Shown here: positions 1 to 64,000 of the stretch, one piece after another
Layout of the letters: each line of letters opens with the position of its first letter
How positions within the stretch are numbered: position 1 is the stretch's first letter
From: Octopus sinensis
Lineage: Eukaryota
Length of the DNA stretch: 64,000 nt
Direction: 5' to 3'
Assembly (NCBI RefSeq): GCF_006345805.1
Contig: NW_021833076.1
Coordinates: forward strand, 1-64,000
Made by a program: the position numbers and the translations under genes
Notes under the pieces: generated by a model
The model's database searches: none
What the model was told of the DNA's origin: nothing
The model's input: the letters and a program-made list of their open reading frames with translations, nothing else

Positions 1-961
1 CATCGAACTTTACATTTACGACGCCCAGAGAACGAACAGGCCGGAATAATCGACGTCTGGCAGTACAACGTCGACCGAGAGTTTCTACAAATCCAGGAAA
101 TAGCCCAAAACTACCACTACATAGCAATTGTACTGCCCACCCCTACTCCCAGGACACCGAATTCCCCGGCTGCATCGAACAAGTCGACCACCGGGTTGTC
201 AAACACCACGGCTATCAAAACGTGGCTGCCAACCTCCGCCAACTAAACGTGATCCAAATCGGGATTTCCTTCTTCACGGAGGACGGACAGTGCCCTCCGG
301 GATTCCACACGTGGCAATTCAACCTCAAATTCAATCTCAAGTTTTCCCGCCTTTCCATCATAGACGGGAAAAATTCAACGAGTCCTCAATCCGACTTTTA
401 CAGAGCGCGGGCCTCAATTTCGAGGACCACGAGAAGTACGGAATCGACCACGACACTTTGGGGTGCCTGTTCTACACGTCGGGACTGATCCTCGACCCCC
501 GCAAGGTCTTTATTGGCTTCCACTGGTTTGTTGAGTTGTTTTGATGTGTTCAGTGCCTTTGATTTTGCCTATCTTGTCAAGGTTCTCAAGTCTGGGTTGG
601 TTCCGTCTTCGGAAACGCGTTTTTTTACTTATTTGAGAAAGTTTTTTCCGCGGATTTATGACTTGAAGTACATGATGAAGTCATGCAGGTCATTGCGTGG
701 GGGACTTCAGGATATTTGCACGTTTTTTGATGTTTGTTGTTGGGGGATGGTTTTGTAGATCAGACGACTGGGGATGCAGCATCAGGCGGGGAGTGACAGT
801 TGGGTGACGGGGATGTGCTTTTTTAGAATGAGAGATGTTTTGCTTTCTCTCTAGTTTAGCTGTTTTTTGCTCCTCATTTGAACGAACGACAGTATTGCAA
901 TATGCTCTTCTTTTTGGGAGGGGAAGCGATGCAGGAGATCACCGATGAGTCTTGTGTTTGA
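1..961 (+). CDS. CNOT7: CCR4-NOT deadenylase CAF1/POP2 (CNOT7/8 family), 5'-partial, five mini-introns
   Basis: Spliced translation gives IIDVWQYNV...YIAI|DTEFPG...TWQFNLKFNL...GFH|AFDFAYL...FFPRIYDLKYMMKSC..LRGGLQ...HQAGSDS, the DEDD nuclease motifs. GT-AG introns at 130-152, 341-363, 526-553, 732-758 and 837-859. Stop TGA at 959-961. CNOT7 versus CNOT8 not resolved. Confidence 0.93.
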
Positions 962-1130
962 ATTGAATTATCTTCTCTTTGTTTTATTTATTAAAAAAGT
1001 GATTTTTGTGAACGTTGGGTTGAATTGTGCTCATTTTTCGTTCCTTATTGCTATTTTCTTCACGTTTTCTTTTGATACTGGATTCCATTGGACTCGACAG
1101 GTTCGACGGAAAATGTTCAATGCATTATAA

Positions 1131-3384
1131 CAGCGTTTCCCAAAGTGGGTGCTGCGGCAAATACTAGGGGTGACCCAAAATTCGAAAAATTATTTTATTA
1201 CGTAAGTAAATTATAAAAAGTTGCAATTAGAGATAAAGAAACGAAAATAACTGTACGAATATCTGTTATACGAATTTGTCAAGTGTTGTGAACAGCTTTT
1301 ATCGAAAGCCGAATGTAGGCTTTGTTTGAAAAAAACTAGCACTTTTACTTGTTCTGAGAAGATAATGAACATAGTGAAAAGTTCTGTTTATGAAGCACTG
1401 ACGTCTCTTTCGAAGTAATGACATACTTCTTTTGTGACTTAGATTAGCTATTTAATTGCCAAAATGGGTGAAGCACATTCGATTGGCTAAATACTGATCA
1501 AACCATGCGTAGAAAAGATTCTTCAATATTTTTCGGTGATGATGATTCCAAAAAGATTGAACTAATTTCATTTTCCAATAACACGATTAGTAGGAGAATA
1601 CATGATATGAAAGCAGAACTCGAATAACAGTTAATAACACGAATGAAAAATCTGCTTTTAGTCTGCATGGATGATTTACCTATATTAATGATTTTTATTT
1701 GTTATTTCTGCAATGAATCTATCGAAGATTTTTTTCTTTGTGAGTCGATTAATTTTATTTATTTATTATTTATTAAATCAAATGAAAATAAATAACAAAT
1801 ATTCAATTGTATCAATAATTATTTTAATGAAACAAATATTTCCTAGATAAACTGTATCAGCGTTATCACTGCGGAACCGGATGTCTTAATCGGTCACACA
1901 ACAAAAATGGGGGAGACAAGATTGACCAGAAGAGACACACGACTCTGTTTGGATTAGTTAGTTCATTGGTAACATGTTCTCTTTCTGTCTTGTTCTTTCT
2001 ATAAAAAAGCGTGGACTGCCTGAGCGAGATGGGAGACATGTCAACATGTTTACATTCGCGTAAGGGCTATTTACGATTTTTACGAAACTGTATTGATGTT
2101 TGTACCGATGAAGAAAAATCAATCACTGGAAAATTTTCTGGAGCAGTTTTTCGTATTAAAGAAATAGCTTGAAAATATTTTACCAATCACTGTATTCTGC
2201 ATTTGTGTCCAAAAATTTACCTATCCACTCAAAAAACCATCTCAATTCGCGGGCGTAACCTGTGAGTGTCGAAATCCGAGACCCGATCTACTGAACAAAG
2301 CTGATTGCCTTTCCGAACAAAGAACCAGATTTCTCAACTGAGAATGGAAAGAATTGGTACTTCTCCGCAAGTGAAGAGTACTTTCGCATATTTTTACATT
2401 CGGCAGTAGTGGCGATTGATTCAGGGGCGTATGTGGACATCAGCAGGTTCTTGGGCGAGAATGAGTCTACACACGTGCATTCCAGGAGGGACGACGGGCC
2501 GTCTCGAAGCAGGCCAAACGATGTTGATCAAGGGATGCGCGGAATGACTTAATACGCGATTGAAGGCGAATTTCTTTCCAAGCAAATTGCATTTGCGGGA
2601 GGTCCGGAATTTCAAGACCAAGCGAGTGCCACTTCATGACGGCCGATGATTACTCTGGAGGCACGTAAAAGATAAAATTATGGCTCTGTCACTAAAAAAT
2701 ACAATATTTGATATTATGTGTTAAAGAAAATAACTTCGAGTGTTTTCAACACAAACACGAATATATTGAGTCCACTACGTTGAACGAGGAATTTTTGTGA
2801 ACTAGTAGATCATTTGGAGCAATTAAAAGTGAATATAAAAAAACATTTTCCAGACAAAAAAGTGAATAATGATCGAAGAGTTTTTTTTGGTGATATTTTT
2901 TTGGTAAAAAGTTTTTTAAAAATATTGTGTAATTGTTTTTTACTATTAAAAAGTCGTTTATTGAGCTCCTTACATAATAGTCAATAAATCAAAAAAAATT
3001 TTTCGCTGAATATCAACAAATTCTTTAAATATTAACAGATCACGAATTGAAATAAGTGTTAAAAAAAGTTAAATAATTTTTAGATTTTAAACTGAATCAT
3101 TGTTTAGTTTTTGGAGTAAAATACAAAATCAGTATCCTTCATTGTCAGACCAGGCTGTCCATGCGCTCTTACCATTTTCGACGACATATTTATCATTTTC
3201 GTTTTCGTTATACACTGCGACCAAAGCAAAATACAGGAATCAATTAGATGCGTTGGTTGACATGAAAGTCCAACTCTCAAGTTTAACTCCTCTTATTAAA
3301 CGACTTTGTAATTGTAAAAAACAATTACACAATATTTTTAAAAAACTTTTTACCAAAAAAATATCACCAAAAAAAACTCTTTGA
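1131..3384 (+). mobile_element. Degenerate hAT (Buster/ZBED5-FAM200-like) DNA transposon, interrupted by insertions
   Basis: Left end CAGCGTTTCCCAAAGTGGG preceded by 8-mer CATTATAA with central TA. Remnant peptides ISFSNNTISRRIHDM (~1560-1610) and the C-terminal dimerisation region QYPSLSDQAVHALLPFSTTYL...TKAKYRNQL (3100-3384). Right TIR not found. Confidence 0.8.
2221..2680 (-). mobile_element. CRE-clade non-LTR retrotransposon fragment, nested in the hAT element
   Basis: Minus strand encodes QFAWKEI...LDQHRLACFETA, then TCVDSFS...TTAECKNMRKYSSLAEKYQFFPFSVEKSGSL...ARELRWFFEWI. This is closely similar to the fragment at 53198-53476. Confidence 0.8.
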
Positions 3385-3447
3385 TAAATTAATGAGGTTT
3401 TCACCGTGGTCTTAAATAAAATAAAAAATAAATAAAAATAACAGACT

Positions 3448-4312
3448 AATGGTTAGTTGTATTTCCTAACATTTAGATATAATTAAAAAATGAAACCAAA
3501 ATAGTTACTATGAATAGAGTTAAAAAATGTTAAGTTTTTAAATTTTTAGCAATTATCTTTTGTCAATAATTAGGTTCAAACTATGTAGGTCACCCTGTCA
3601 ACAATGAAGGTCGCAGGAGTGGGGCGCGACATACTATATCGGAATTATACAGTCGCATCTTATGAATGGACAATCCTAATAATCCCACAATAGAACACCA
3701 CCATCCTTCTTACCCGCGATCACTTTCCAGAGAAGAACACAGATTACTTTATCAACCCTTCTGACCTAACCTTAACTTAAAAAAAGTTGAAAAAAAATCC
3801 CTAACCAATAAATTTCGAGAAATTAAAAAGGCGCAGCAATACCGATGATTCCACAGGCAATTCGAGGACCACTATTCCCTGTGATTGGACTCAACTCATG
3901 TTTGCCCCTGTTAAGGTCGTCGGCCCACTCGTGCAACTACAAATACATCCCTCCCACATACCACGAGTGTCCTCCCAATCACAGAGTGGGGTCCAATCAA
4001 CTGAATCTGCGCATCACGTACATCCAAATTCGCCACTCCATCAGAAAATAACAAATTGCCCAAATCACCGACATGTCTGATCAACAGAGAACGGGTACCT
4101 CTCTTCGTCAGTTATATCTCCGTGCACTTTTCCGAAGGGGTTGTAGTGACTACCCGCGGACGTACACCCTGCCAGTTTTGGGGAATGAATGTACCGTTTG
4201 TAAGGTCGCCAAATTCGTGGATATGAAACCCGTGTTGTCCGTCTGCGACTTTTCCGTTGAGAGTGGTGATTTTTCCGAAAATGTGAGTGGTCTCCGAAGC
4301 GGACTGTTTTAG
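3448..4312 (+). CDS. Unidentified multi-exon gene (approximate limits)
   Basis: GC-richer island with several GT-AG mini-intron candidates and a Cys-containing last segment ([13 protein letters not shown]). No family recognised and no complete frame could be assembled. Confidence 0.35.
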
Positions 4313-6082
4313 TTATTTTAGTTTATACTGCTTGGGAAAATTTGATAATTCCATGAATATTTAAATCAGGGTTTGAGAGCACACAAACAGCGTACGCCAT
4401 GCAACTGAAATTATAATTTATTTGCCATATTATTACGTCTAATAAATATCATTTTTAATTATATACAAAAATTAATTCTTCTAATCTTAGCTGACCTATT
4501 CGCTCAAGTTTTGAAAGCAAAAAATGTGAGACACATCCAAATCTACTATAGTTAGCTAGTTGATTTTTAGCGAAGAATATTTGCGAAGAATAAATTCACC
4601 TTCGTTGTTAATCAAGTTTAGAAACTTGAAAGCGAATGCTCATTTACAAACCCGATATAGTTGGAGTTAATTGCACTTTTTCCTTTTTTAGATCTTTCAA
4701 GTAAAGTCTAAAAATCCAACTTTAGTTTGTTTCATTCTTTATAAAGAGAATAACATTCCATTTCCATAAATTTGATAATTGACTTGCATTTTATTTAATA
4801 ATTCCAAAAACTTTTCTTTATAACAATGGAAAAAACCTTATTAACGCAAATTAAATGTGGAATTATACAAATTGGGACAGCATCATCGACTTTTGCCAAC
4901 AGAACTACATTTATTGAATAAAGTTAAGTTTAGATTTATCATCAAGTGTATTGTTTTATTGAAAATAATTATAAAATAAAGCCTATGAAAGCTTAGTGCT
5001 CATTTTACAATCCTTTAGTTTTTATTAAGAAGACTGAAGTAAAATTTGGACATTTTCTGAGAATAAACTTCAAACTCAGTTTGTAACAGAATAGTTTAAT
5101 GAATGGAATTTTATGGCAAGTCTAATGCTGAGAGCTGCAGTAATTTCAATTCTAATATGAAAAAATTTAGAGTGGTTGAAAAATAAATATAGAATGTAAG
5201 ATGTAGAGATAAAACACATTTGCGACATTTCCAGACGGTTGTAAATATTTCCTTGCTTTCTGAAAATCAAAACTTAGGAACAAGAATAATAATATTTATA
5301 GTCAAATAAATAAGAATCCGATTCTGACGATTCGTTAGGTTCATTTTGTTTGGTAAAAGATTCGAAAAAGACCTTTAATTTGATATAAACCTCATCTAAA
5401 TAGATAAAACTAGTAACGCATCTTGTTGGTCGTCTGCAAATATTGTATGAACTCAGACGATATTACACTCTGTCGTACAAACTAATACAGAATGATCTGA
5501 GAATACGTGATAGAAGGATTAGTTTTTGCAAGAAGAGATTTTTAGTTTTGAAAGAATGTGGATGAAGTCTTAACCATGGATGATCTAGTTATGTCTTTTT
5601 TAGAACACATGATAAACCATGAGCAACTCTAAAAATACATTTCAGGAAATTTCTGTGATGTAAATCCGAAATCAGCAAAGGACGACGTAGACCATAAAAA
5701 TGTAAAACCAGACAATCCTACCAATCTCCTTCACAAATAAACATTTAGTTGGTCAATATTGAAAAAATCATTAAGAATACGCGACGAATCTATCAGAACA
5801 GAGTTGAATGAAAAATTAATTTGGAATGTTTTAACATGTTCGAAAAATACATTATTTAGTATTATTTTTTAAACAGTTTCTATATAGCTTTTATATTTTG
5901 TATATCGGATTTTGATAAGAATCATCATTGATGACTCCAATTATTAACTACTTAAAACACAGTGAAATAAAAATACAAAATGACCAATAACCCATCTAAA
6001 AAAGTGCCCGCAATACTGCAATGAGTAAAAATACATAACTATCACTTTCAAATATAAAATGATTTTATTACTGAAAAGTCAA

Positions 6083-7867
6083 TCACCAGGTTTTACTCCA
6101 CAAAAAATGATGGACTCGCTTACTAATAACAGGCCCAACTCTTCTACACAATCACAAGTTGATAAAACCGTCTCCCATCGGAAATATTAGCCAACATGGA
6201 CAGTCGAGTGTCATCATCTGGACAAGACCGATATGCCTCAATCAACCTCCCCAGACTGCCATACTTCGTGGCGATCGAGGAACTCTTCATGACCGACATT
6301 CCTTCCACCTGACACAACACCATCGTCAGCATTGCAGACCCGGATATGTCCTCCAATATACCAATACCAGTACTATCGATTTCCCAAAACGGCGGGAAAA
6401 ATCTGAAAATGAATAGAATATTGCATCTTCTTTCCCGCGCTTTTCCAATACTTGTTCAATCGGCTTCACGTGGATGTCGACTCCCTGCAATGTGGGATGG
6501 GAATACCCTAAATTGGCTGCTCAGGTGACTGTGGACAGTCTTGAGCAACCTAGCAGTGGAAACTGAGTTGAATGTGCGATAAACACGAATTTGGTCGATG
6601 ATCAACAAATAGAGAGGGAATATACTTGTATGTTACATATGGCCTGTTGGAGAGAGGACGAGTTGAGTGAGCAGTAGAGTGCCCCTTTTCTACCATCCTC
6701 GACCACATACATTATATTCCTAATTCCTGTCGTTTTGAGGCGATGCTGTCATTTAGGCCTGTCCAATACCTTCTGCTCGTGGAGACGTCCGTCAATTATA
6801 GACGAGGCAAGGTCGTCAATTCGTTTCCTCTCCACAATAAAATCAAGCACCACATCGTCATCATCTATTATTTATTTATTTATTAAAATAAATAAATTAT
6901 ATATATTTAAATATTTAAACAAATATTTAAATAAATAAATTAATTACTCACGTGGACACACAGGGTGCTCAGAATGCCTTGAATACACCCACAAATAATC
7001 CCCCACAACCAGTTTGGTGACACAGTAGTCAATACTGGCCAACTCCCGGAAGAGCTGTTCATTCCGATTCCCACAGAACTCACAATTATCCACGTACAGC
7101 ACAATCCGCCCTCCCTCACTCGGATGCACTACCGTCCTCTCCCCTCCTGTCAACTCACTCGACTGAGCCCCCGAGCCCGCCAAATCTATTTCCGCGCTGA
7201 TGGTTGACCACAGTCTGGTCCCTTCTGGTGTCAGACAGTACCTTAAATATACAAAATGGTATATTTTCACTCAGTTGCTGTTTTTTTCCCGACGACTTTT
7301 AATTTTAGTAAATTTTTCATAGATTTCCATATTTCTGAGTCGTCTATTATTTAAATAAATAAATATACCAATGTTGTCGACGTGGGTGATGTACTTTTTC
7401 GATCTTTCAATAAGAACAGCCTTAGTTGCTCGATCATTCTCGTTGTTCTATATTGACAGAAAGAAAAAAACCTCAGTTAAAGCCATTATTAAGCCATAAC
7501 CGGCAGATCCCTCAGAATATGACGACACTGGGCGAGTTGGATTGCAAGGATTTGTAGTCCTTGTTGTCTCAGGATTTGTCTGTGCCAGTCTTTGGTCGAC
7601 CATTGCACACAATTTAGGTCCAAAACCCTCCAGGATTTTACAATCGTTGCCTGATTTGATTCGGATAGGGAATTTCCTTAGGGAGGCTGCGGCCTATTGG
7701 AATAGATGTTAGGTTAGTACTTTTCTGTATATAAACTTTGACATGAGTCCATCTTTGGAGGATTGGTCTTGTAGTTCTTTAAGCCATTTAAGGATATCAA
7801 CGTTGGGATTTTTGTTTATTTTTACTTTTCTTATTTTGTTATCAACAGGAGCACCACCTGACTCCAT
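6083..7867 (-). CDS. MUS81: Crossover-junction endonuclease MUS81
   Basis: N-terminal [12 protein letters not shown]...YRK|[33 protein letters not shown]. Winged-helix region [13 protein letters not shown]4 domain LVVGDYLWV...[21 protein letters not shown]-terminal HhH ...[15 protein letters not shown]. Confidence 0.92.
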
Positions 7868-8209
7868 TTTTTAAATATTTTATTTATTACGAGATTAGTA
7901 AGGCCAATTATATTATTAAAAGAATTAAAAATAATTGGTATATTAAAAAACCAGAAATGAATTAAATTAATATATTTTATATAAAAGAAAATTATTTATA
8001 TATGGAAAATTTGTTTAAAAAAGGCAGTCTGTCTTTCCCTCCATTTTTTGCTGAGATGTAAAAATGGATGGTTAACCATTAAAAATCAAATCACATTTTT
8101 GATGAGGAAACACATTTTCCTTCATTTTCGAAGAGAAAACAAAATTTTTTGAACTCTCCTTTGCCTCATTCGTCGTCCCTACAATCAAAACCCCCTCAAA
8201 CTCTCAATT

Positions 8210-9856
8210 TTAGCACTCATCTCCTCCCTCTCGTACTTCCTCACCAACGACCTCATCCATTTGTGTTTGAGGGCACTGCAGGGGGTCATCCTCCGTGCTG
8301 GATCCCACCTAAATTGATGAATAACGTCATCACAACTCGAGACATTTGGCTATAAAATCGACAAAAATCGTGTCGTTTGAGCCGACAGCAGACGCGAGAG
8401 ATTTGGAGGCGGGTTTGGACTTTCTTCTGCACTTGGAGGTGACAGTCAGTTTGTTATTTGAATCTAAACTTATTTTGTATATTTGACCAAAAAAATAGCT
8501 TTTCCTGGAAGAATTGGCAATCATGTGAGTGGGCGGGTAGTCGAGGACCTGAATTATGTAGGACAATTGTTCGTGTTCGTTCTCCCCAGGGAAGAGTGGA
8601 TTCCCCGTGTACAATTCCGCAAGGATGCACCCGAGACTCCACATGTCAATCAACGTGGAATACGGAATCCCCAGGATCACTTCCGGGGCTCGGTAGAACC
8701 GGGACTGGATGTAGGAAAACACTAATATCAACAGGACTGACCAACATCGTTTATCCTCGTGACAACTTGACCCAAAGTCAATTATTTTGCATTTGCTTTG
8801 GCTGTTTTTGAGTAGTAGAATGTTCTCCTGTGGGTTGAGTAAGGGGGATACGGGTTTGAGGTCACAGTGGATGATTTTCTCCTTGTAGAGCAAGACCAGG
8901 CTTTGGAGAATGTGGTAGTTCAGTTTCCGAATTGTGCCCAAACTCATCCCTCCAAAGTTATTTCTTTTCAAAGCTTCGTATAAACTTGTTCTAAACACTA
9001 AAAACTCCCCAAAACCCCAAAAGTTCAAAACAAATGCACAAATGATTACGAAAGTAAAAATACTCGTTCATGTGGACAACATTGTACAAATTTTTGGTGT
9101 CCTTTCGCAGGATTTTGTCCAACATTTCCACCTCCATCAACGCCTGTTGGTGGAATCTACCCTCGTCAGGAAAACTGACCTTCGTTTGTTGCGAATAAGT
9201 TTAACTGCCACTGTGCGGTCTAATTTGTGGTCGTGGCATTTGAGGACCTGCCCGAAGGACCCTTTTCCTAATTCCTCGATGACTTGGAATCGGTAGTGGA
9301 GGTGGTCGTTGATGGTCTGTTGGTGGGGACGGAATACTTTTATGTAAAATCCCTGCTCGTTGTCAAATCCGTTGTTGTTTTTGAACTCGTTTGTTTCCCG
9401 TTTGCTCGCATTTGACCCAAAATACCAAATTTGTTTGTATTTGAGTATTTCCGACTGCTCGAATGTGGTCAACTTGTTTCCAAAATGGAGCAAGCAGTCT
9501 ACTTTAAATATTATTTCCAGACCTTCCCCGCTCATTGGGAGTTGGGCCCTGCTCGGCATTGGTGTGTTGCTGACTCTGCCTTGGAGAGACATTTTTCGGT
9601 TTGTTTTTTGAGTCCTGTCCACACGTTGTTTAATCTCGGGGAGAACGGTTCTGTCGGAAGGGATTTTGTTATGATTCAACCAGTTATGTTTATCCATAAA
9701 AAGGGAGACTATCAATATAATCCGAAATAACAGCACATAATAATTAGAATAAATATATATTACCCTATCGATCAGCTTGCTTTGATGGCTTAAAATGCTG
9801 ACAATCGATTCAATGTCACAATTCCCCTTTGTTCTTGTAAGTAGGATTTATACCAT
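8210..9856 (-). CDS. DYRK2: Class-2 dual-specificity tyrosine-regulated kinase (DYRK2/3/4); both ends approximate
   Basis: NAPA/DH-box region [12 protein letters not shown]...[26 protein letters not shown]|[28 protein letters not shown]. Several 24-nt in-frame introns. Confidence 0.92.
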
Positions 9857-10001
9857 TGTTGACCTTTGTGTATTATTTTTATTAGAGTTATTCTTTTGGT
9901 TATATATTCTAATAAATTATGTTGGTTGAATTAATTATGTGAATTTTAATCATTAAATAATAATTAATTTTAATAATTTAGGTCGACGTGGGGGTAAAGT
10001 A

Positions 10002-10358
10002 ATGATCCCTCGATTTGTATCATTTCCGAGAGTAATTTTTAATCATTTTTAAAAAACAAGTTTATTTCGAACGGTCAAATTAAAAAAATGAAGAAATACT
10101 GCCTCATCTCTGCAAGTGACGAATATTACAAATCTGTAATAATCAAGTACGAGCGATTATGCAGTCGTTTGTCCGAGGTGGACACCAAGGGAGTGGAACC
10201 CATGTGTTTTCCCAACGAAGACGAATTGTGTTCCGAATATATTCCATTCTAGGGTCGCCACTCTGAGATCAGACTCCGAAAGCAATGATATTGATAAAAA
10301 TATAATATTCAAAAACACAAAAAATTCTGTCAACGATTATTTTGTAGTTAAAAAGTAA
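10002..10358 (+). CDS. GATC: Mitochondrial Glu-tRNA(Gln) amidotransferase subunit C (absent from the ORF track)
   Basis: Two mini-introns join MIPRFVSFPR|FISNGQIKKMKKYCL...RLSEVDTKGVEPM...EL|VATLRSD...NDYFVVKK*. It contains the GatC signature L..VDT.GVEP, LRSD and the terminal YFV. Confidence 0.75.
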
Positions 10359-10759
10359 TTTAAATAATATTAATTCCAAACATTTTTCTATTAATATTGT
10401 TTTCGTGGTTTTTCTTGGGAATCTTTCATATTGCCTTGTTAAATGATTAAAGTCGAATAATAAGAATAAATTTATTTTGGACCGTACAACGTATCCGTGC
10501 TTACAGGAAACAAAAGTAAAGGATGGATTAGACAGAATCAATTTACGCCTGATTCTGTGCCCCACTGAACAGTTGGTGTAAAACCGAATTAACTTTGTGA
10601 TAAACTTTTTATCCAGATTTGGATGATCACGGCCGGTTACATTTTACCATGAAAAATTTCAATTTAACCTTGAACAAATCATCCTATTTTAATCATTAAA
10701 GATTAATGTATTTTATTTAAAATCTGATTTATTTTGAACCAATAATAAATTAATAGTTA

Positions 10760-13700: not shown

Positions 13701-13950
13701 CGCCGAATTCAATCCTGTCAATATATCGGTTTTCAAAATGTCACAATATATAATAGTCATTTAATAACGTAGTTTGATGTTTCTGCCAGTGTTGTGCTTT
13801 TTTGCAACTCTTGCTTCTCAGATATATAGTTTTAACATTTCTCGAAAGGAAGCAATATTTTTATCAAACCTCTCTATAATTCCAAATACAATTCAAAATG
13901 AGTGTAAATCGAAAAGTATATATTTTTTTAATTTGTGAGATTTAACTCAA
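10760..13950 (-). mobile_element. Degenerate R4/Dong-like non-LTR retrotransposon (RT + CCHC + restriction-like endonuclease); ends approximate
   Basis: RT motifs WVDVKKAYDSV, GILQGDSLSPLLF and NHLLFIDDLK. Zinc knuckle C..C...TVDHMATQC. After one frameshift, PDIFVHD...LIEVGIT...EK..KY. Multiple frameshifts. Confidence 0.88.
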
Positions 13951-15440: not shown

Positions 15441-15444
15441 TCAA

Positions 15445-17388: not shown

Positions 17389-17389
17389 A

Positions 17390-50900: not shown

Positions 50901-52181
50901 TTTGTCTTCAAACTTCCTGCAGGGCGGAATTTTCGATATCTGAGAGCGATGGACCGTAGATTGAGGGAATCCTGCAATTCTAGAATGCTCGCGTACTGCA
51001 AAACCGTCAAGACAACTCAAACCTGCAATCTGTCCAGCGTCAGTTCGAGGTTGCCGAGCTTTACTTGTCCTCTCACTTTGGACTGAGTGTAACCCACTTC
51101 TCTCGGCTTCATGTTTATTTCCAATTTGGCATCCAAGGACAGTGGAAGTAGCACTTGTCCAATAATGCTCCCATTTGAATGACCTCCGATCGTCCTGCTC
51201 AAATACTCCTAAGATTTAATTATTCCTCAAACTTTTATTTCATGAGCGGATTTGTCCGCAACGAGACTCTGGCAGTCAGCATCACAGTAGACGGTCAGCG
51301 ATCGAAGTTCAGCTAGCTACAATATTTTGACAATTAACATAAATAAATCAGTGTACCTAAATACTTATTAATTTAATTATTTAATTTGTAGCTAGTTAAT
51401 TAATAAATAAACTATTGCATAAATCTGTCATGTGGTCACCTTGTTAAAAATGAAACGAGTCTCAGTGATGATAGTTTGCTTCCAATCCTCACCCACAGTC
51501 TACGAATGGTCAGTCCAAATGGCTTACTCTGACGACAATATCGTTCAATGTGACCCCCAATGACAATGGTTTAGTCACATTGCTCGAATCCTCATACCGA
51601 ATATGCACATTCCTGACCGTCAGCTGAATATTCTTGATGACCTGAAGTAGAATCATCTCCACATATCCCGTGGAACCATGACTCTCTACCCTCAACACTC
51701 ACACCTCACTTGTGGGTTGACTGTTGCGCTCGATTCTCTCCAAGTCTGCCATTTTCTTAGCCTGGGTGAGCCTGTCTTCCTCCTCCTGGTTGTACGACTG
51801 GCCTGGGAGTGAGGACAGTGCCCCACCATCGCTGGGCCGACAACACACGAGCACGTCCGTAATCTCCCCTACGACGGGGGCCTTGTAGATATTCGTCCAG
51901 GGAACTTGCAGGCGAAATGTGCCTGCTGAGTGAGTCCCATTACCAATGTGGCCGTAGATTATGCGGACTGGAATGTTGTTGTCTTCCTGCGTGATTAGAC
52001 AGGTGGGGTACAAAGATGGTCGTCCTCAGGGTCAGGTCTTTGAGGAGGATGTCGCCTATTGTGGGTGGTTTGTTGTTCTACCTTTCCAAATGTTCGTCTT
52101 GAGCTGGTCCTTGTCGAGGTTACAAATGTAGTCCCCCAGAGCTCGATTTAGGATGTCGGCAACCAGACTCTCGAATACCAT
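41904..52181 (-). CDS. VPS13: VPS13A/C-type bridge-like lipid transfer protein, many mini-introns
   Basis: Chorein N-terminus [31 protein letters not shown] and [25 protein letters not shown]-terminal LGADVLGNP...[18 protein letters not shown] and GVLVGVVG...RPLGG. A versus C not resolved. Confidence 0.93.
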
Positions 52182-53476: not shown

Positions 53477-54231
53477 AGCTTTCAAAACTTGACTGATTTC
53501 TTTTTTCAGTAAATCCCGAATTAAAAAAATTTTCGTACCCCTTATTGATTTTTAAAAATTTAATGAGAAAAAATAGTCAATTAATGAAATGGATGGTGCT
53601 CTTTATCAACAACTAATCTTCTTACATCTTTGGATAAAAGACACATTGAAAATCATCCTTAACATTTAGTCCCGCACGATGGACTGATTTTAAATTGAAT
53701 AATGATGAAAATCAACAAATCGATTATATATAATCCAATGTATTGATATCACATCAAAATTCAATGAATTTTGGAAATTCGAATAAGTTTTTTAACTAAC
53801 ATTTGAAGATAAATCATAAACTTTACACAAAAAATATTTATCATGATTAATTTCAGTATATTTTCGTCTCCGACCCCCTACTGAATATTGCATTCTTCAG
53901 TCAGAAATGAACTGATTTCATTTTAGTGACCTGATTTAAATTTACCTATCAAAAAAATTGATATAGATTATTTGAAACGAAGGTGAGCGAATATTTTCTG
54001 TTTTGGTAATAAGACCATTTGTTGAAAATAATTTGTCTTAAGACGAGAACACGGATAAATACTCAGAACATGAAAGCGAAACAAATACTCATATGATGTC
54101 ACCCAAATTCCTTAAATAAATAAATCTTTGTTATAACAAAAATAATCCAATATTATCTACCGACTACCGAAAGTGAGGACTACTACGACAAATGTAAAAA
54201 GACACAAACCGACTCCTGGTGACAGTCCTGC

Positions 54232-55037
54232 TCAGGTTCCTCCAGTTGACTGCCAAAGTACAGCCTGTATGTATAATTCACCACCGAACTGACAGCCTCC
54301 TACAAATACAAATATGCTCAAACTTCCTCGATACTCATCAAAAACTGATTGGCAGTCAAAACAAGCATGCACATCCTCGCCACCAACACCTTCGACGGCC
54401 AATACTCTACAACACTCGGCCACACTCCCATCTCCCAAACTGGCTTCATCCCCGTCCTCGCAAGCAAACAGGAAGCCACCACCACTTGCTGGGCTCCCAG
54501 GGCCGAACACGACACGACTCGACTGACCTTCTCCCTCACACAACTTCCGCAGTTGTTCACCCCCGTTTTCACGGAATCGACTGTTTCGTAGACTGCCGAG
54601 ATCTTTCTTCCCGCATACTGGCCTGCCATGCGTCCTTTTTCTTCGATTTGCCCAGAAACGAGGCTGGCCACCTTTTCCCTGTCGCCCAAAGTTCGGGTCA
54701 CTTCCGAACAGCGAGACTCGATTTCCTTTTTGAGAGCCACCGCAGAACTTCCGAATTCGCCAATTTCAGTAATTGTTTTGTTGTATATCTAATGAGTGGC
54801 TGCATTGTGGTTTACCTCACGTGGGGTCATTTTGACTATTCTTATGTTGTTTTCAAGAATGTCAATTCCGCTGTTCAGAATATTGTTTATTTTGCAGGCT
54901 ATAGTTCTTGTCCCACTCAGGTCGACTGCCTTCTGAGCAAGAAATGCGACTGGCGACAAAATTGGCAAATTTGCAAATCGTGTAAGAGAGTCTTGACTAA
55001 TTATTAATCCAAACAAATGATACCACCTGACAGACAT
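54232..55037 (-). CDS. Perilipin (PAT-family)-like lipid droplet protein; 3' end approximate
   Basis: QDSLTRFANLPILS and ACK...GIDILENNIRIVKMTPRE|I resemble the PAT domain, followed by amphipathic repeat-like sequence. Two mini-introns resolved. Confidence 0.55.
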
Positions 55038-55334: not shown

Positions 55335-56077
55335 ATGAACCAAAAATTTTCGTTCGGAAAAGTAGTAGTCGATTGTGAGCGTAGACGTACGAGGATCAGC
55401 TGATGCGACTGATAGGCCAACACCTCCACCTGTGCTGCAGGGACAAACTGTGCTACGTCGGGGAGGAGGACGAGAGTTTGGTGGAGACCATCAGCGAGGA
55501 GTTCCAGTTGATCACTCCCCCTAAATGCCTGTCTCCGCGGTCACTCTTCACTTCCGTCCGCCGGAATACAAGCATAGACGAGTACTTCTCGACCTCCTCC
55601 ACGATGAGGACTCGTTTCAACCGCCTCCTCGTCGTCCACTGCTACCACAAAATTGACAATTTCAAATGGTTTCTCCAAAGCATTTTTTCACAAGTTTTTG
55701 ACACAAACCATTAAAGATGGACAGGGATTTCCGGATTATGGTCATCGCCCGTCCTCCCGCCCTCAACACGCTGCCCGCCCTCCCACGTGCAGGGGAGAAC
55801 TACCACATCGACATTCTCCGTGACCTCAAAAGCTTTGACTTGGATATCGACTACCAGGTGGGTGTTGTGGTCAATGCAGATTGAAACGATTGTATTCTGC
55901 ATTCACAAAGAGGACTGGTTCCGCATGCTGGCCGACGGGTTCCCCCACGACCAGACGAAGGACAGTCAGGGGGAATTTAACTACGCGGACAGTGTGGTCG
56001 AAATGAAGGACCGTCTTATTTGTATAAGCGCAGGGAGGTCGACTCACTCACACAATGTCATTATTGACAAGACTTGA
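55335..56077 (+). CDS. Uncharacterised class I SAM-methyltransferase-like protein
   Basis: A 23-nt intron joins MNQKFSFGK|TYEDQLMRLIGQHLHL...LCYVG...RFNRLLVVHCYH...IARPPALNTLP...EMKDRLICISA. The family call is from remembered motif resemblance only. Confidence 0.45.
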
Positions 56078-56318
56078 TTTTCCCTAATTTACCTCCACAT
56101 TAACACCCCCCCTTGAGACCATCTAGAGAAGCACTCAATCCTTAGGCGAGTGCCCCATATGTTAACACCCACCTCCTTCCTGCACTATGAAGCACTCAAT
56201 CCTTAACCAGATCACTCCCACTGTTTGAATAAACATCCCGCTGTGGAAGCAAGTTTTGTTTACCAATAAGCTGACAATTCCCCTCACTACACAACAGAAA
56301 GAACACAAATAAGAAATG

Positions 56319-56985
56319 TCAAAAGATAGTTTTATCGACGGCCGAATCAACGGGGGAAGACACGTCGGAGGGGTTAGGAGTGAGTTCATAGTTGTAGAGG
56401 AGTATTCCCGGACGGTTGAGTCGGTCGAACTGCCCCTTCAGTCCAATGTAGTAAATGCGAGTGGACTCTGCCCCGTAGTTCTCTGGGAAGTAGAGGGACA
56501 GACTGGTTATGTTCTTCATTTGTTGGGTTGTGCTTGTATTGAACACCATCACCTCATTCGCAGAATTCCCCACCACAAACTCCACGTCCGCCTTCGGGGG
56601 GATTCTCCCAAAATTCGTGAAGGTCACGTTTTTATAGCTACCGCTGAGTGTAGTGCTTACATTTTGAGTTTGGAGGGATGGGCTCTGCCGACTCCCCCGT
56701 AGAGCATGACCGACTCCAAGTTGACTGACCCTGTGAATCTACGCACTTATTCCGGGGAATGTACGAGAAGCTGAACAATAGTTCGGGGTCAACGTCACTT
56801 TCGACATAATCGGGACTGTGGCGTTGCTCGTACGGTTTAAACACAGTTCTTCCTGTGCCTCGTCTTTTTTCGTTCAGGCATATCAGAGATGTAAAGTCTA
56901 TTCTTTGGTATAGACTGTAGCCTTCTTCCTGACCAGAGTTACTCTTTTCTCCACAACAACAACCACCAGAATGATTGTGCATCAT
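56319..56985 (-). CDS. PITHD1: PITH domain-containing protein 1
   Basis: HNHSGGCCC, YSLYQRID...CLNE...GRTVFKPYEQR...YVESDVDPELLF, and SLSLYFPENYGAESTRIYYIGLKG. Confidence 0.92.
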
Positions 56986-57039: not shown

Positions 57040-59307
57040 TTAATTCAACAATGATTTATCAAATCCTTTTTCTGATTTTTCAAAATCATATTCGAGACGC
57101 AATTTTCTCAATTCGTCAGCAGCCCTTTCTCTAACAAAGATTAATAAAAATTCCCACTTTTGCAATTTCTCGTCCAGAAAACGCGTCCTAAGTTGCCTTA
57201 AATCCGATTCGATGCCAGTGCAGGAAGCCTGTGTGAGTTTCAAATCTCTCTGAAGTAGTCCGCTTTGACCCGGTAATCACAAAAAATACTTTTCCTTTTG
57301 CAAAGAGGCCACTTTCTCTTCGAGGGTATCAATTTTTGACTGTTTTTTGTCGATTGTCAATTCTTGCTGTGTTCGCGTGTGTCTGACTGCCTGCAGTGTG
57401 TCGTCGAGGAATTGACATTTCTGTCTCCCCTCCTCGATCTGCCTTTTCAGGTCATTCATCTCCCTGGCCTGTTGGTCGACCTCCTCCTCCAACTATAAAT
57501 GTCATTCACAGTCCTCCCTTCTGTGTGCTGTCCTCCTGCTCGGCCAGTCGACTCCGCAACTCCTCATTTCCCTGTTTTAGTTCGAGTTGCATGTTGCTGT
57601 CCGTCCTGGCCTTGTCTTCGGCCAGTTTATTTCTCGTCTCCCACATCATTACTTGATTCTCCAAAGTCCCCACTGTGTAATTCAGTCGATACAATTCTCT
57701 TTCCAAATCTCGCTTTTCTTCAAAAAACTACGTCTTTGTGGCAACCAGAAGTACTTCCCGATTTTCCCGTTCTAATGCTGCAATCTCCTTGCCCAATTTC
57801 TCGGAATTTTGCACCTGTCTTTTGATTTCTGCCATTTCGGCGTCCTGTCTGGTCTTTTCGGAAAGTGCAGCAGCCTCCGACTGTTTTATTACCCTCGCCA
57901 ATTCTCTGTTTTGGTGAAGAGCCTCACTCAAGTCGTGCTCCTGAATACTCTCGTCACCAGACTGACCAGTTCGAGATTCTGCTGGGATGTCCTCTCCTGG
58001 TATTCCTCAGTTTCAAACGCTTTGATGGAGTTTCTCAGATTGTCGCAGTCGCTTTCCAGTTGACTGAGTGTGTTTGATTGCTTGGCCAATTCTTGTTGTT
58101 TGTTGTCCAACTCGTTTTTGAGAGCCAGCACGTGACTGTCACTCATAAACAAACTCTTTTCGAGTTCTTTGATGGCGAGGTCACTTTTATTATGAAATAT
58201 TTGTACCTCCTTTCGCGTGTGTCTTTGAGCATATTCCGAGCCTCCTCCAACTCTTTTCGAATTTCCTCGTTCTGTTCGTCGTTGTGCTGTGTGGAGAACA
58301 GTAATTGTTTATTCTCTTGTTCCGTGTGTCTCAGGTCTGCAATCGTCCTCCGAATCTGCATATTTGTAGAGATATACATTTGTCATTTGTTCTTCCATGT
58401 CTGCCACTTTTATGCGCAGTTCGTCTCTTTCGGCTTTCACATTTTCGTGGACACTTTGAGATCTTCCTCTTGTCGGCTTGATCACCTCCATTGCTCTCAG
58501 AAGGTCGGCGATCTCTGTTCTGTAGTGTGCACACTCGTCTTCCACATCCCGGAGGTGGTCTTCCATCAAAAAACTTATTTCGCGTCTACATGTTCGTTTG
58601 GTCTTCAAATCGTGCATTTCGTTCAGGATTTGTTTGTCTAAGTTTGTGAACTGACTACGAACTGGTCGAAAGTTGTCTCTCTAATCGAGAGGATAGTTGG
58701 TCCTTGGATTTGTGGACGTTTTTTAACAATTTTTCCAGTTCAGTGCTCCTCTCTTGTTCCCTCACTAACGCCTGTTCGGCCAGTCCGCGTTTTCTTTCAA
58801 GAACCACGTTATCCTTGATGGTGACATTACGCAATACTTTTATATAGGAGTCGATTCGTTTGTCTGTTTGCCGTATTTTGTCTTCATCTTCAGTCAGACG
58901 AGTCTAAAAGTGATCTCTCGAACACCCACTGATTGGAGTAATCTTATTTGTTGGGAATAGGAAGTGTTTTGGTCCTCTAAATATGTGTTCTTGTTAAGCA
59001 GGACTTGGATCCGAGCCCTCAGACGGTCAATTTCGATTCGGTTATCTCTTCTCTCTGTTTGAACATGTTCTTGATTGGAGTGATGATGCCTCCTATTTGT
59101 GCGCATATTCAAATATACGGCTGATTGAATATTATTTAAGTCATTGCTGGGGTTACTACTAGTTACGAGCCTGGATACATAAACATATCTTTTAAGTCAT
59201 TATGTCCGTCGATTCCCCATAAATCGATTTGAAATAAAGATGGTGGAAATGACCCTTTTTGAGTATTGTCTGGCTATATTGAGGGGACAAAACAAAATGG
59301 AAGGCAT
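57040..59307 (-). CDS. Long coiled-coil protein, CEP135/TSGA10-like; start approximate
   Basis: Continuous heptad-rich exons. EDHLRDVEDECAHYRTEI and VKAERDELRIKVADMEEQM resemble CEP135 segments. Confidence 0.5.
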
Positions 59308-59403: not shown

Positions 59404-60899
<1,496 letters not shown>

Positions 60900-62400: not shown

Positions 62401-62469
62401 AGTCATGATCTATTTCAGACAATGTTGACCTGACTAAGTGAACTCGGCTAAGTTGACACAAATCTCCGC

Positions 62470-63459
62470 ATGGAAAGATTAGGTTTGTTTAAATTGTTCT
62501 TGGATAATAATTAATTATCAAATAAAATACATAAATCATTAGGAGTTGTGTGGTTGTGTCAAAGATGGAAGATAAAGGTGAGAATGTGAATTGGATGTAC
62601 GACAACAAGATAAATAGAGAAGATTTCCTACTAGGAAAGAGAATTACAAATGAAGATGTAACGAATTTGGGTATCATTCGAGTGTGATCACAAATAGCTG
62701 AGGAGAGCAAAAAACACCTCAAAATGAAGGCATACATGGACATGCAGGCCAAAATGCGGGAGGATCCTCTCTACATAGTCCGGTAGTCAGTCCACTCATC
62801 ACTCGCAGGAAAAAGGAATTAGAGGCGAGGTTCAAAATCATCAACAATCCCATCAAAATGAAAAGACTGCGCCAACAAGTAGTGCTCCCCCTTCATTGTA
62901 GGTCGAAAGAGAGTCCACCACTGACGATATGCTCCTCACCAGGTGGACAGTCCAACTCATCTGCAGGTACTTCAAAGAAATCGTGGGGCAAGAAGGACAG
63001 GAGCAGGGAGGCGAGGAACCCGAAACACCAAAAAAGCGTGAAGGGCACAAGAGGAGTTCACGTCACCACGAGGAAAGGCATTCTCGGTCTAGACGTGACT
63101 ATGCGAGAAGTGGGAGAAGAGGGGACAGCAGAGAAGAGAGGAGTGGGCGAAGAGGAGGCAGTAGAGAAGAGAGGAGAAGAGGGGAGAGTAGAGACGAGAG
63201 GGAGGAGAGGATGGCCAGAAGGAGGGAAGAAATGTCGAGGGATGCTCAGTTGCATGCTCAGCAAAGACTCAGTCGACTGACTGCGTATGAGAATAAAGTG
63301 AAGGAGGAGGAGACGGCGACTAAAAACATGTCTGCTGAGGGAACAGCATCCTCGCTGTACATTGGAGGTCTGGTCAACAAACATTCAGAGGAAACTAATT
63401 TGGAGTCGGAGGTGAGTCGAAGAAGGTACACGAATAAAGGAGTGGACAGAGATGACTGA
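62470..63459 (+). CDS. CWC25: Step-I splicing factor CWC25; conserved N-terminal segment not found; start uncertain (62470 or 62565)
   Basis: VNWMY...REDFLLGKRI, DMQAKMREDPLYIVR and IINNPIKMKRL, followed by an R/E/S-rich tract and NLESEVSRRRY. Confidence 0.85.
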
Positions 63460-63496
63460 CTGTTATAATAAATTGGCATTTCAATTAGTATATATA

Positions 63497-64000
63497 TTAA
63501 TCAAACGGACTGTCGACCGGCTGGCGATACTTTGGATTAAAAAAGTTCCAAATAACAATGGTGTCGTCGTGCGAACACGTCATGATCTGGAATTTGTCGA
63601 ACATTAGTCTGAACACTCGCCCAGTGTGTTCCTGTCGGGTGGCACAACACGACTAACTTGTTTAGTGGCAATGCAGTGCTGACGGCTGTTCCACTCGGAG
63701 GACATGACGGAACGATAGTCCCATATCTTGATCTTACTAGGCAGTAGACAGAGAGTGCCAACGCATCGTAGGAGCCACTGACAATGTAGTCGTCACTGAA
63801 GCGAATGCATCTCACCAAGTCATCATGTCCAGACAACACACGCAGACATATTCCCTCGAAAATGTCCCACAGTCTGATCGTCTTGTCCGAACTCCCACTG
63901 GCCACAATGTTCCCCCGCTGGTGAAGACATGCAATGCCCCGTCTGTGCCCCATCAATGTGTTCCTGACTGTCAACGTCTCCCTCGACCAAACCTGCACGT
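63497..64000 (-). CDS. BTRC: beta-TrCP (FBXW1/FBXW11), 3' part; runs off the window
   Basis: GHRRGIACL...[12 protein letters not shown]...[17 protein letters not shown]...SGSYD and [20 protein letters not shown]. Confidence 0.92.

Follow-up and report, generated by a model that had tools for sequence, protein, structure and literature searches.

A C/A-to-G/T strand skew along the genes of a compact animal-type genome, possibly a mutational asymmetry aligned with transcription

Introduction

In most unicellular fungi, C is favoured on the coding strand at the 5′ end of genes and G at the 3′ end, 4-fold degenerate sites and UTRs included, and a C-bias has been reported at the transcription start site (TSS) of invertebrates (PMC3315797). 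The fungal bias was read as the product of distinct mutational regimes of initiation, elongation and termination. The skew described here, from a 64-kb window (the whole stretch of DNA analysed), is a strong variant of this gene-end skew already known from yeasts. As in fungi, mid-gene values are intermediate and amino-acid usage differs between the two ends of a protein. However, the AT skew of fungi is flat along genes, with (A−T) positively correlated with the GC skew, whereas here T−A flips together with G−C. The fungal bias is a linear ramp that peaks in the promoter and 5′ UTR; the present change is an abrupt switch, with no bias seen upstream of the ATG. The amplitude is also larger here, with the G+T fraction going from about 0.42 to 0.63 in single genes and the pattern visible by eye, and the present host has an animal-type genome with introns of ~23 nt.

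Transcription-associated strand asymmetry was reportedly described in mammals by Green in 2003, Touchon in 2003, and Polak and Arndt in 2008. The mammalian coding strand carries a G+T excess in introns, and the skew jumps at the TSS with divergent transcription. The G+T versus A+C axis and its visibility in introns are shared with the window, and the mammalian sign is that of the 3′ domain and of the VPS13 introns described below. Nevertheless, a mammalian gene keeps one sign with a maximum just past the TSS, whereas in the window the sign is reversed over the promoter-proximal ~0.5 kb.

Bacterial ori/ter domains and human N-domains resemble the present skew in that GC and TA skew jump abruptly upward (5′ to 3′ on the reference strand) and in a deamination-type axis. 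Replication skew units, however, span 10^2–10^3 kb, whereas those of the window span 1–2 kb, have a length-dependent amplitude, correspond to genes and do not occur in transposon DNA. In vertebrate mitochondria, the G+T-rich and A+C-rich H/L strands are ascribed to deamination (C>T and A>G) of whichever strand is transiently single-stranded. There too the strands divide into G+T and A+C and amino-acid composition is affected, but polarity is single per molecule and the gradient is set by single-stranded time; the present skew is nuclear, gene-by-gene and two-state. Mirror-image base-composition anomalies are also said to occur at the ends of the gene-sized chromosomes of hypotrich ciliates (Prescott and Dizick in 2000, Cavalcanti in 2004). 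The likeness lies in gene-sized units with mirror-image intrastrand skews at both ends, but the ciliate anomalies are of the purine/pyrimidine type, cover about 50–100 bp beside telomeres and lie on separate molecules, whereas the present ones are of the keto/amino type in contiguous genes on 64 kb.

Results

Skew was measured throughout as KM = (G+T−A−C)/N in ~19 host genes of one 64-kb window, whose genome is compact and animal-type, with introns of ~23 nt. An initial annotation had noticed by eye that gene islands begin C/A-rich and end G/T-rich on the + strand, and its six hand counts were all exact on recount: A25 C21 G7 T7 at 18241–18300, A14 C7 G22 T17 at 19081–19140, C27 G9 at 27601–27660, C4 G21 at 27961–28020, and, in CAF1 introns, C12 G3 at 130–152 and C0 G12 at 732–758. 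The skew along genes is a real observation. The + strand rise occurs in 16 of the 19 host genes (z from +1.7 to +7.3, binomial p = 0.004), in 5/5 genes of the + strand and 10/12 of the − strand; the exceptions are U55, the PITH CDS and a cut WD40 gene. Read in the sense direction, genes on either strand begin C/A-rich (15/17 genes at 100–200 nt from the ATG) and finish G/T-rich (15/18 over the last 100 nt). From 5′ to 3′, runs of three or more G become more frequent (9.4 to 17.5 per kb) and runs of three or more C less so (13.0 to 7.3 per kb). The skewed domains are ~0.5 kb long and tied to gene ends, with neutral middles in long genes, and the amplitude declines from ~0.25 in 1-kb genes to 0.03–0.07 in VPS13. 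G−C and T−A skews change in concert along host genes, which indicates a transition axis. This agrees with the deamination-type signature on the keto/amino axis proposed initially, as strand-asymmetric C>T and A>G transitions predict such co-variation.

The CAF1/CNOT7-like gene (1–961, + strand; Pfam CAF1, profile and step fit; 5′ end cut by the window) is C/A-rich on the sense strand to ~504 and G/T-rich from there on, the G+T fraction going from 0.40 to 0.67. PDSS1 (17952–19193, + strand; hand model, orthologues at 41–45% identity, PF00348) switches abruptly at 18422/18423, the boundary of exon 1 and intron 1, with G+T fractions of 0.42 and 0.61 on the two sides. The gene initially named PGS1 (19505–20695, + strand; no Pfam match) switches at ~20240, within a single continuous 261-codon exon. 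On the − strand, switches lie at ~4092 in the Cu/Zn SOD gene (3823–4400; Pfam Sod_Cu), at ~26574 in a Myt1-like kinase gene (25966–27062; weak Pfam Pkinase) and at ~27730–27776 in the farnesyltransferase beta gene FNTB (27199–28557; Pfam Prenyltrans). The gradient is strong in the inositol monophosphatase gene (24717–25605, − strand; Pfam Inositol_P), with + strand thirds of −0.31, −0.01 and +0.18, and is present in the PUS1-like gene (35718–37104, − strand; weak Pfam match). An unnamed gene (54183–55037, − strand as given by the model only) forms a clear C/A-to-G/T unit. A DYRK-like protein kinase gene (8185–9620, − strand; Pfam Pkinase; N-terminal limit uncertain) has a positive + strand trend overall with several local flips. 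As the initial annotation had held, the pattern is weaker in VPS13, in the S6K-like kinase gene (59404–60899, + strand; Pfam Pkinase; switch ~59723) and in the CWC25-like gene (62565–63459, + strand; weak Pfam CWC25), where it is masked by purine-rich Glu/Lys/Arg coding.

Several loci depart from one unit per gene. MUS81 (6144–7867, − strand; Pfam HHH_8, ERCC4 and EME1-MUS81_C, with sequence and reading-frame continuity) contains two C/A-to-G/T units with switches at ~7184 and ~6418, and the sense strand resets from G/T-rich to weakly C/A-rich at an AT-rich intron of 87 nt and ~4% GC (6865–6951, − strand). The switch of the PITH-domain gene (56078–56985 with its 240-bp 3′ flank, − strand; Pfam PITH) lies at the stop codon (56351), so the CDS alone appears exceptional; the convergent U55/PITH pair acts as a single island with one switch. 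At the FNTB/kinesin boundary the skew flips downward at the FNTB ATG (~28536) without a strongly AT-rich spacer. The kinesin gene (29025–31838, − strand; Pfam Kinesin) is C/A-rich at 4-fold sites in the first 450 nt of its CDS (−0.45), has no G/T arm at its 3′ end and has a GC-rich downstream flank. In the 10.7-kb VPS13 gene (41466–52181, − strand; Pfam VPS13_N), the terminal 450-nt stretches of the CDS have 4-fold KM values of −0.17 (5′) and +0.29 (3′), the interior has no trend and the introns lean G/T uniformly at about +0.1. Two Ras-family paralogues (37389–37781 and 40265–40903, together 37389–40903, + strand; Pfam Ras), intronless and AT-rich, provide a negative control within the window and have no gradient. 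Nor has the transposon-rich block at 9900–17800 (no strand assigned; RT fragment 12353–13760, hAT-like ORF 16603–17770), whose AT-rich segments lack flanking skew. The absence claimed by eye for transposons and Ras genes was borne out, with |z| < 2 for both paralogues, two RT fragments, the hAT-like ORF and the transposon block.

At 4-fold sites KM climbs from −0.15 over the first 130 codons through 0.00 (+0.006) mid-gene to +0.13 over the final 150 codons, in the expected direction in 14/16 genes (Wilcoxon p = 0.0013). On the sense strand, G is lost and A and C are gained in the 5′ domain, and C is lost and T gained in the 3′ domain; codon positions 1, 2 and 3 shift in one common direction. 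Intron interiors give −0.10, +0.09 and +0.21 by thirds of the gene, and the gradient across 87 short interiors (Spearman 0.44, p = 2e-5) is present on each strand (0.48 for + genes, 0.42 for − genes). A change of sign within genes is found at both kinds of site in this window. The amino-acid composition of PDSS1, compared with 80 orthologues that are compositionally flat along the protein, has a C-terminal shift of +0.46 ± 0.14 in the direction of the skew. Introns, 4-fold sites and the 3′ flank uphold the initial claim that protein constraint does not explain the skew.

The argument that independence of gene orientation speaks against transcription was a logical slip, since a sense-strand gradient that changes sign yields the same mirror image. 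Because the sign flips along each gene, + and − genes alike run from C/A-rich (left) to G/T-rich (right) on the + strand; this pattern is its own reverse complement, and orientation independence is therefore uninformative. In coding regions the sense KM of the 5′ and 3′ thirds sums to +0.03 (p = 0.37), indistinguishable from a perfect mirror, and the orientation-dependent evidence thus rests on flanks and introns, to which poly(A) and splice signals could contribute. The G/T arm continues ~150 nt beyond the stop codon (+0.11, p = 0.006), whereas the C/A arm stops short of the region upstream of the ATG (+0.02). The difference between the two flanks has p = 0.005, and the uniform G/T lean of the VPS13 introns is a further sign of some orientation dependence. 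A GC-rich downstream flank goes with loss of the 3′ arm (rho = −0.68, p = 0.002).

The switch takes under about 150–200 nt, and logistic widths of at least 80 nt were rejected (0/30 simulations). Its distance from the ATG ranges from 308 to 833 nt across genes. GC at switch points is 0.44–0.60, and neither an AT-rich nor another recognisable element was found there. The profile of 1-kb genes resembles a square wave, and in PDSS1 and CAF1 the C/A arm peaks beside the switch rather than at the edge.

Discussion

We tentatively favour, with confidence a little short of even, a mutational asymmetry aligned with transcription units and acting in two regimes. Over the promoter-proximal ~0.3–0.8 kb the coding strand would lose G and gain A and C, over the last ~0.5 kb and the 3′ UTR it would lose C and gain T and G, and the middles of long genes would stay near neutral. 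Each regime may match one phase of RNA polymerase II transcription, early or late. Candidate sources are R-loops at the 3′ end, antisense transcription within the 5′ domain, and unequal exposure or repair of the template and non-template strands. The skew was probably built by strand-asymmetric transition mutations or by their repair, and its origin appears mutational rather than selective.

The fungal and invertebrate precedent (PMC3315797) was counted in favour of this transcriptional reading. So were the sense-strand counts of genes skewed near the ATG and over the last 100 nt, the co-varying G−C and T−A skews, the neutral-site gradient, the joint shift of all codon positions, the intron gradient, the pull on PDSS1 amino acids, the skew past the stop codon but not upstream of the ATG, and the restriction of both domains to the terminal 450 nt of the VPS13 CDS. 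The FNTB/kinesin flip, the flat transposons and Ras paralogues, and the unskewed flanks of AT-rich transposon segments were placed on the same side. Counted against it were the mirror symmetry of coding regions, the variable and very sharp switch position, the mid-gene MUS81 reset at an AT-rich intron, the single U55/PITH island and the loss of the 3′ arm beside a GC-rich downstream flank. We know of no Pol II transition as discrete as the observed switch.

The initial annotation had proposed 5′ resection from breaks in the AT-rich spacers. In this reading, recurrent germline breaks in the nucleosome-free spacers that flank genes, such as meiotic DSBs near promoters and terminators, would be resected 5′ to 3′, leaving ~0.5 kb of the 3′-ended strand single-stranded and subject to C>T and A>G changes. 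We regard this as unlikely, though ahead of the other alternatives. It gives the correct sign on either side of each spacer, and the base signature fits, with G loss and A gain at sense 5′ ends and C loss and T gain at 3′ ends. Domains reaching ~0.5 kb from the ends with neutral middles in long genes, the near-perfect mirror symmetry of coding regions, the MUS81 reset at the 4%-GC intron, the U55/PITH pair behaving as one island and the missing 3′ arm without an AT-rich flank also suit it. However, two overlapping broad gradients should cross smoothly, whereas the mid-gene switch is abrupt and widths of at least 80 nt are rejected; the C/A arm of PDSS1 and CAF1 is strongest beside the switch; and the flanks are asymmetric, with skew past the stop and none upstream of the ATG. 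Moreover, AT-rich segments of transposon regions lack flanking skew, the reset is absent or weak at three further long AT-rich introns, and the FNTB/kinesin flip lacks a strongly AT-rich spacer. We know of no precedent for such skew amplitude at hotspots. The break idea is accordingly weakened by the abrupt switch, the flank asymmetry and the unskewed transposon segments, while its deamination-type axis stands. Neither a DNA-break nor a replication-origin cause is demonstrated by the data.

Selection on the nucleic acid itself seems somewhat less probable still. C/A richness at the 5′ end would leave the pre-mRNA free of structure or make R-loops and G4 near the promoter less likely, and a G/U-rich 3′ region would promote pausing, R-loops and termination where spacers are 50–500 bp; the ‘C-avoidance’ idea of McLean and Tirosh is grouped here. 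The whole pre-mRNA is covered, introns and 3′ UTR included, G3+ runs rise and C3+ runs fall from 5′ to 3′, and the abrupt two-state shape has a designed look. The arrangement of local composition also shifts predicted pairing from local to long range, but MFE z-scores against local-composition shuffles (−1.3, −0.4, 0.0, −2.1, −0.1) give no sequence-specific 5′–3′ complementarity, which disfavours the fold-back of transcripts suggested initially, and overall folding is neither weaker nor stronger than in global shuffles. Amino-acid composition is altered, which would be costly under selection, the expressed-looking Ras paralogues lack the pattern and the interiors of long genes are unconstrained. 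A variant based on avoidance of cryptic splice sites fails: the expected GT × AG product is 0.0054 in the G/T arm, above the 0.0041 of the middle.

A replication origin or internal divergent promoter central to each gene island is very improbable. Initiation would occur at a fixed point marked by the upward G+T jump, by analogy with bacterial oriC and human N-domain borders, and the abrupt upward jump of GC and TA skew within each short gene, the square-wave-like profile of 1-kb genes and the agreement in sign with a G- and T-rich leading strand are in its favour. Units of 1–2 kb, however, would require every gene to fire and every 100–400-bp spacer to be a terminus in each S phase. One origin per island, as suggested initially, is disfavoured because amplitude should ignore arm length, whereas it falls from ~0.25 in short genes to 0.03–0.07 in VPS13, whose skew is confined to the terminal ~450 nt. 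Switch points (GC 0.44–0.60) carry no AT-rich or recognisable element, and transposon DNA lacks such domains.

Chance, an annotation artefact or a protein-composition effect has practically no standing and is already contradicted: protein composition can dominate local skew, as in CWC25 and a coiled-coil gene with purine-rich Glu/Lys/Arg codons, but the pattern is present in 16/19 genes with z up to +7.3, extends to introns, 4-fold sites and the 3′ flank, and appears in a PDSS1 whose orthologues are compositionally flat along their length.

Generality of the skew and the sites involved

The 64-kb window is 39% GC, with gene islands of 43–51% GC set among AT-rich spacers and transposon debris. 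Strand asymmetry is expressed here as KM = (G+T−A−C)/N, which is positive in G/T-rich and negative in C/A-rich sequence. A rise from C/A-rich on the left to G/T-rich on the right of the + strand is found in 16 of 19 host genes (z +1.7 to +7.3, binomial p = 0.004); counted by strand, it occurs in 5/5 genes on the + strand and 10/12 on the − strand. The T-A and G-C skews shift jointly. The initial annotation had described this rise from hand counts, all of which were exact on recount, and its observation is confirmed as real. It was also right that the pattern is weak in VPS13, S6K and CWC25. The Ras paralogues, both reverse transcriptase (RT) fragments, the hAT-like open reading frame (ORF) and the transposon block carry no gradient (absolute z < 2 in all). 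All results come from a single window with about 19 genes. Their models came from a purpose-written dynamic-programming splicer with strands fixed by Pfam; intron boundaries are approximate, and the models of MYT1, S6K and the middle of SOD1 are partly garbled.

Protein constraint had been judged unable to explain the skew, and this holds, since intron interiors and 4-fold degenerate sites both follow the gradient. The KM of 87 short intron interiors is −0.10, +0.09 and +0.21 in successive gene thirds (Spearman 0.44, p = 2e-5), and the intron gradient is present on each strand taken alone. At 4-fold sites, KM rises from −0.15 over the opening 130 codons through +0.006 in mid-gene to +0.13 over the closing 150, with the gradient seen in 14/16 genes (Wilcoxon p = 0.0013). 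GC skew at these sites goes from −0.17 in the first 130 codons to +0.17 in the last 150, and T-A skew from −0.13 to +0.08; the latter moves from −0.07 to +0.18 in introns and from −0.22 to +0.28 in CAF1. The 5′ domain, at the sense-strand start of the gene, is short of G and has an excess of A and C at 4-fold sites, and the 3′ domain is short of C and has an excess of T. All three codon positions move in one direction. The skew at 4-fold sites implies that amino-acid choice is not the driver.

The skew is visible by eye and strong enough to tilt the make-up of a protein from its N- to its C-terminus. In the one gene compared in this way, PDSS1, amino-acid composition relative to 80 orthologues is −0.23 at aa 80–157 and +0.46 ± 0.14 at aa 300–372; the orthologues are compositionally flat along their length, and PDSS1 is pulled in the direction of the skew. 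The best PDSS1 match in the protein database is 41–45% identical, the proteins of the window's own genome being absent from that database.

Domains and the switch between them

Over the ~400 nt that follow the ATG, sense KM is −0.09 to −0.13 and up to 15/17 genes are C/A-rich; over the closing ~500 nt it is +0.07 to +0.17 and up to 15/18 genes are G/T-rich. Long genes are near-neutral between these end domains. For instance, the coding sequence of VPS13 has a 4-fold KM of −0.17 over its opening 450 nt and of +0.29 over its closing 450 nt, and the 8.5 kb between are trendless. The kinesin gene starts with a 4-fold KM of −0.45. In short genes one domain directly adjoins the other, with an abrupt switch: for 12/13 units a step describes the profile better than a linear gradient does, the G+T fraction going from ~0.44 to ~0.63. 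A parametric bootstrap rejects logistic widths from 80 nt upwards (0/30 simulations), and 40 nt is a borderline case (2/30). The switch lies 308–833 nt from the ATG, and downward flips fall in spacers. No recognisable element was found at the switch points, where the surrounding sequence is GC-rich. An association with introns was rejected, because the 5/11 switches within 35 nt of an intron are about what chance gives with one intron per ~200 nt.

Some genes depart from this plan. CWC25 contains imperfect, purine-rich repeats of 27–33 nt (63105–63211) that encode a stretch rich in Glu, Lys, Arg and Gly, and the purine loading of these repeats masks its C/A to G/T pattern. The coiled-coil gene (57040–59307) is likewise purine-rich on its sense strand. 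The Ras paralogues (37389–37781 and 40265–40903) lie in an AT-rich stretch at 34–35% GC, without the GC enrichment and skew of the other host genes, and may be retrocopies or silent in the germline.

Orientation of the pattern

The independence of gene orientation had been taken as a pointer to a process acting at DNA ends. This argument fails. On reverse complementation left and right change places, as do G/T and C/A, so a pattern that is C/A-rich on the left and G/T-rich on the right is its own mirror image, and a gene on either strand then reads as C/A-rich at its sense 5′ end and G/T-rich at its 3′ end. A transcript-oriented gradient that changes sign gives the same picture. What discriminates is whether the sense profile is exactly antisymmetric about the centre of the gene. 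The coding thirds are a statistically perfect mirror (the 5′ and 3′ sense KM sum to +0.03); as antisymmetry is not rejected (p = 0.37), coding regions alone leave a process blind to orientation possible.

The flanks and introns are not symmetric in this way. The G/T arm, the gene-end domain, reaches ~150 nt beyond the stop codon (KM +0.11, p = 0.006). On the other side, the C/A arm does not extend upstream of the ATG, where 150 nt have a KM of +0.02, and the stop and ATG sides differ (p = 0.005). Intron KM crosses zero at ~20–35% of gene length, and the 44 introns of VPS13 lean uniformly to G/T, at about +0.1 throughout. Part of the asymmetry of flanks and introns could stem from poly(A) and splice signals. 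A third departure from the mirror is the lack of skew beside AT-rich segments of transposon DNA.

The repeating unit

The unit of the pattern may be the gene or a block bounded by AT-rich sequence, and the cases are divided. MUS81 holds two skew units, with a reset at an 87-nt intron (6865–6951) of ~4% GC; this intron contains AATAAA-like strings and resembles an intergenic spacer. The gene labelled U55 and the PITH-domain gene, a convergent pair (55403–56985), behave as one island with one switch, their stops being 240 bp apart without an AT-rich spacer. These two cases favour the block. Pointing the same way, genes with a GC-rich downstream flank lack the 3′ arm (rho = −0.68, p = 0.002). Against it, FNTB (the farnesyltransferase beta gene) and kinesin flip at a common boundary without a strongly AT-rich spacer, and no clear reset is seen at three further long AT-rich introns, one in PUS1 (36583–36704) and two in VPS13 (51317–51439 and 41794–41881). 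AT-rich segments within transposon DNA are also without flanking skew, and AT-richness alone is therefore not the anchor. A second convergent pair, CWC25 and the WD40 gene (62565–64000), has stops 77 bp apart, again without an AT-rich spacer; with stops so close, the 3′ UTRs in both pairs must overlap or be very short.

Possible mechanisms

We tentatively favor an asymmetry aligned with the transcription unit, probably mutational and divided into two regimes, a reading that we hold with somewhat less than even confidence. The axis of the skew is that of transitions. The 3′ domain matches the usual C>T and A>G bias of the non-template strand, and the 5′ domain looks as if the template strand were exposed, or as though the non-template strand retained its G and T lesions. 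The molecular step might lie in a difference between early and late Pol II complexes, in 5′ antisense transcription or in 3′ R-loops. Deamination of methylated CpG was rejected as a source: CpG observed/expected is 0.73–0.80 in all domains, and the excess of TpG versus CpA does not track the skew. The mild CpG depletion is equal in the 5′ and 3′ domains.

Alternatively, breaks in the spacers flanking genes, followed by resection, could have left the skew. This would account for its sign, its reach of ~0.5 kb and the cases of MUS81 and U55/PITH, and the opposite skews at GC-rich spacer flanks, typically positive on the left and negative on the right, are as expected. Nevertheless, we consider it unlikely. 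Breaks and resection predict symmetry about the spacer, a maximum at the edge and a smooth decay, whereas the flanks are asymmetric, the switch in mid-gene is abrupt, and the C/A arm of PDSS1 peaks beside the switch. The silence of AT-rich transposon DNA is also hard to explain. Slightly less probable again is the wider proposal that both domains were written by a DNA-end process at nucleosome-free, AT-rich spacers flanking genes and not by transcription, through recurrent germline breaks resected over ~0.5 kb or through a programmed fragmentation into pieces the size of a gene. The lineage has been reported to eliminate chromatin and to form extrachromosomal circles (PMC6543705). Were such a process at work, each gene would bear a heritable footprint of the strand left single-stranded at each of its ends.

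Selection on the pre-mRNA or the DNA is a still more doubtful explanation. Fold-back of transcripts, raised in the initial annotation, found no support: minimum free energies (MFE) of five pre-mRNAs against local-composition shuffles gave z of −1.3, −0.4, 0.0, −2.1 and −0.1, and thus no specific complementarity. Avoidance of cryptic splice sites for the ultra-short introns was rejected, as the expected product of GT and AG peaks in the G/T arm. One replication origin per gene would supply the abrupt upward jump in GC and TA skew, but is very improbable, since amplitude set by fork polarity should ignore arm length and gene content and instead falls from ~0.25 in 1-kb genes to 0.03–0.07 in VPS13 and is absent from transposon DNA.

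Comparison with known gene-end skews

In most unicellular fungi the GC skew is known to take opposite signs at the two gene ends, 5′ and 3′ (McLean & Tirosh 2011; PMC3315797), to extend to 4-fold sites and UTRs and to have amino-acid consequences; a C-bias at the transcription start site (TSS) of invertebrates is cited in the same work. As in fungi, the coding strand of the conforming genes here favours C toward the 5′ end and G toward the 3′ end, 4-fold sites take part, and amino-acid usage shifts between N- and C-termini, as shown for PDSS1. The fungal skew reaches the promoter, 5′ UTR and 3′ UTR; here it enters the 3′ flank and is near zero in the 150 nt before the ATG. In fungi AT skew stays level from one gene end to the other; here it flips together with GC skew, and the switch is step-like and the amplitude larger. 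The mammalian type, a G+T excess of one sign throughout the coding strand, is reversed here in the first ~400 nt and is matched only in the VPS13 introns.

Gene-end skew as such has thus been described already, and what we rate as new are the AT flip, the step-like switch, the amplitude and the host lineage. The gene and intron statistics of the window fit Dicyema japonicum (PMC6736024), a host assignment that is not proven; a myxobolid with comparably short introns (PMC13644364) is a possible alternative host. The genome of the window is one of ~5,000 short genes with 23-nt introns. The D. japonicum genome has 36.7% GC, 49% repeats and a mean exon of 198 bp (PMC6736024). No report of skew in dicyemid nuclear genes was found in the searchable literature, the Dicyema skew work found being mitochondrial, and neither the dicyemid genome papers nor the ultra-short-intron paper mentions skew or asymmetry.

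If the pattern extends genome-wide, the intragenic strand asymmetry would be unusually strong for an animal, and models of codon usage, gene-finding programs and phylogenetic models would be misled for an already long-branched parasite lineage. Gene-end skews may arise from mutagenesis or repair specific to a phase of Pol II transcription, from breaks made during recombination at promoters and terminators, or from selection on pre-mRNA. A sharp two-state skew with an AT flip offers a cleaner handle on this question than the fungal case.

Genes and repeats of the window

Pfam and orthologue searches placed CAF1, PDSS1, the S6K-like kinase, CWC25 and the two intronless Ras paralogues on the + strand. 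On the − strand they placed Cu/Zn SOD, MUS81, a DYRK-like kinase, inositol monophosphatase, the Myt1-like kinase, farnesyltransferase beta, kinesin, the PUS1-like gene, VPS13 (10.7 kb), the PITH-domain gene, the coiled-coil gene and a WD40 gene truncated by the window end. PGS1, named in the initial annotation, lies on the + strand and has no Pfam match, and two further genes are unnamed. The window genes use the standard genetic code. Introns are GT..AG and mostly 18–34 nt long; a few, of 87–123 nt, are very AT-rich. No tRNA gene was found by ARAGORN in the 64 kb, nor any Rfam family at the gathering threshold.

Transposon debris spans 9900–17800 and 20750–24500. It includes LINE-type RT fragments at 12353–13760 and 22357–23040 and a DUF659/hAT-like ORF at 16603–17770, all on the − strand, ~35% GC and unskewed. 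GpC is under-represented in gene domains (observed/expected 0.66–0.68) versus 1.01 in transposon DNA (9900–17800), and CpG is mildly depleted everywhere, in genes and in the same transposon block (0.73–0.85). A 95-nt unit is repeated in tandem at 32703–34068 (14.4 copies, 91% matches), is C/A-rich on the + strand and is immediately preceded by a (TG/TCTG)n tract at ~32640–32679; the gene called there by the dynamic-programming finder was rejected as false. A 120-nt unit is present in 2 copies with 90% matches at 35003–35240, within the spacer that lies upstream of the PUS1-like gene region.
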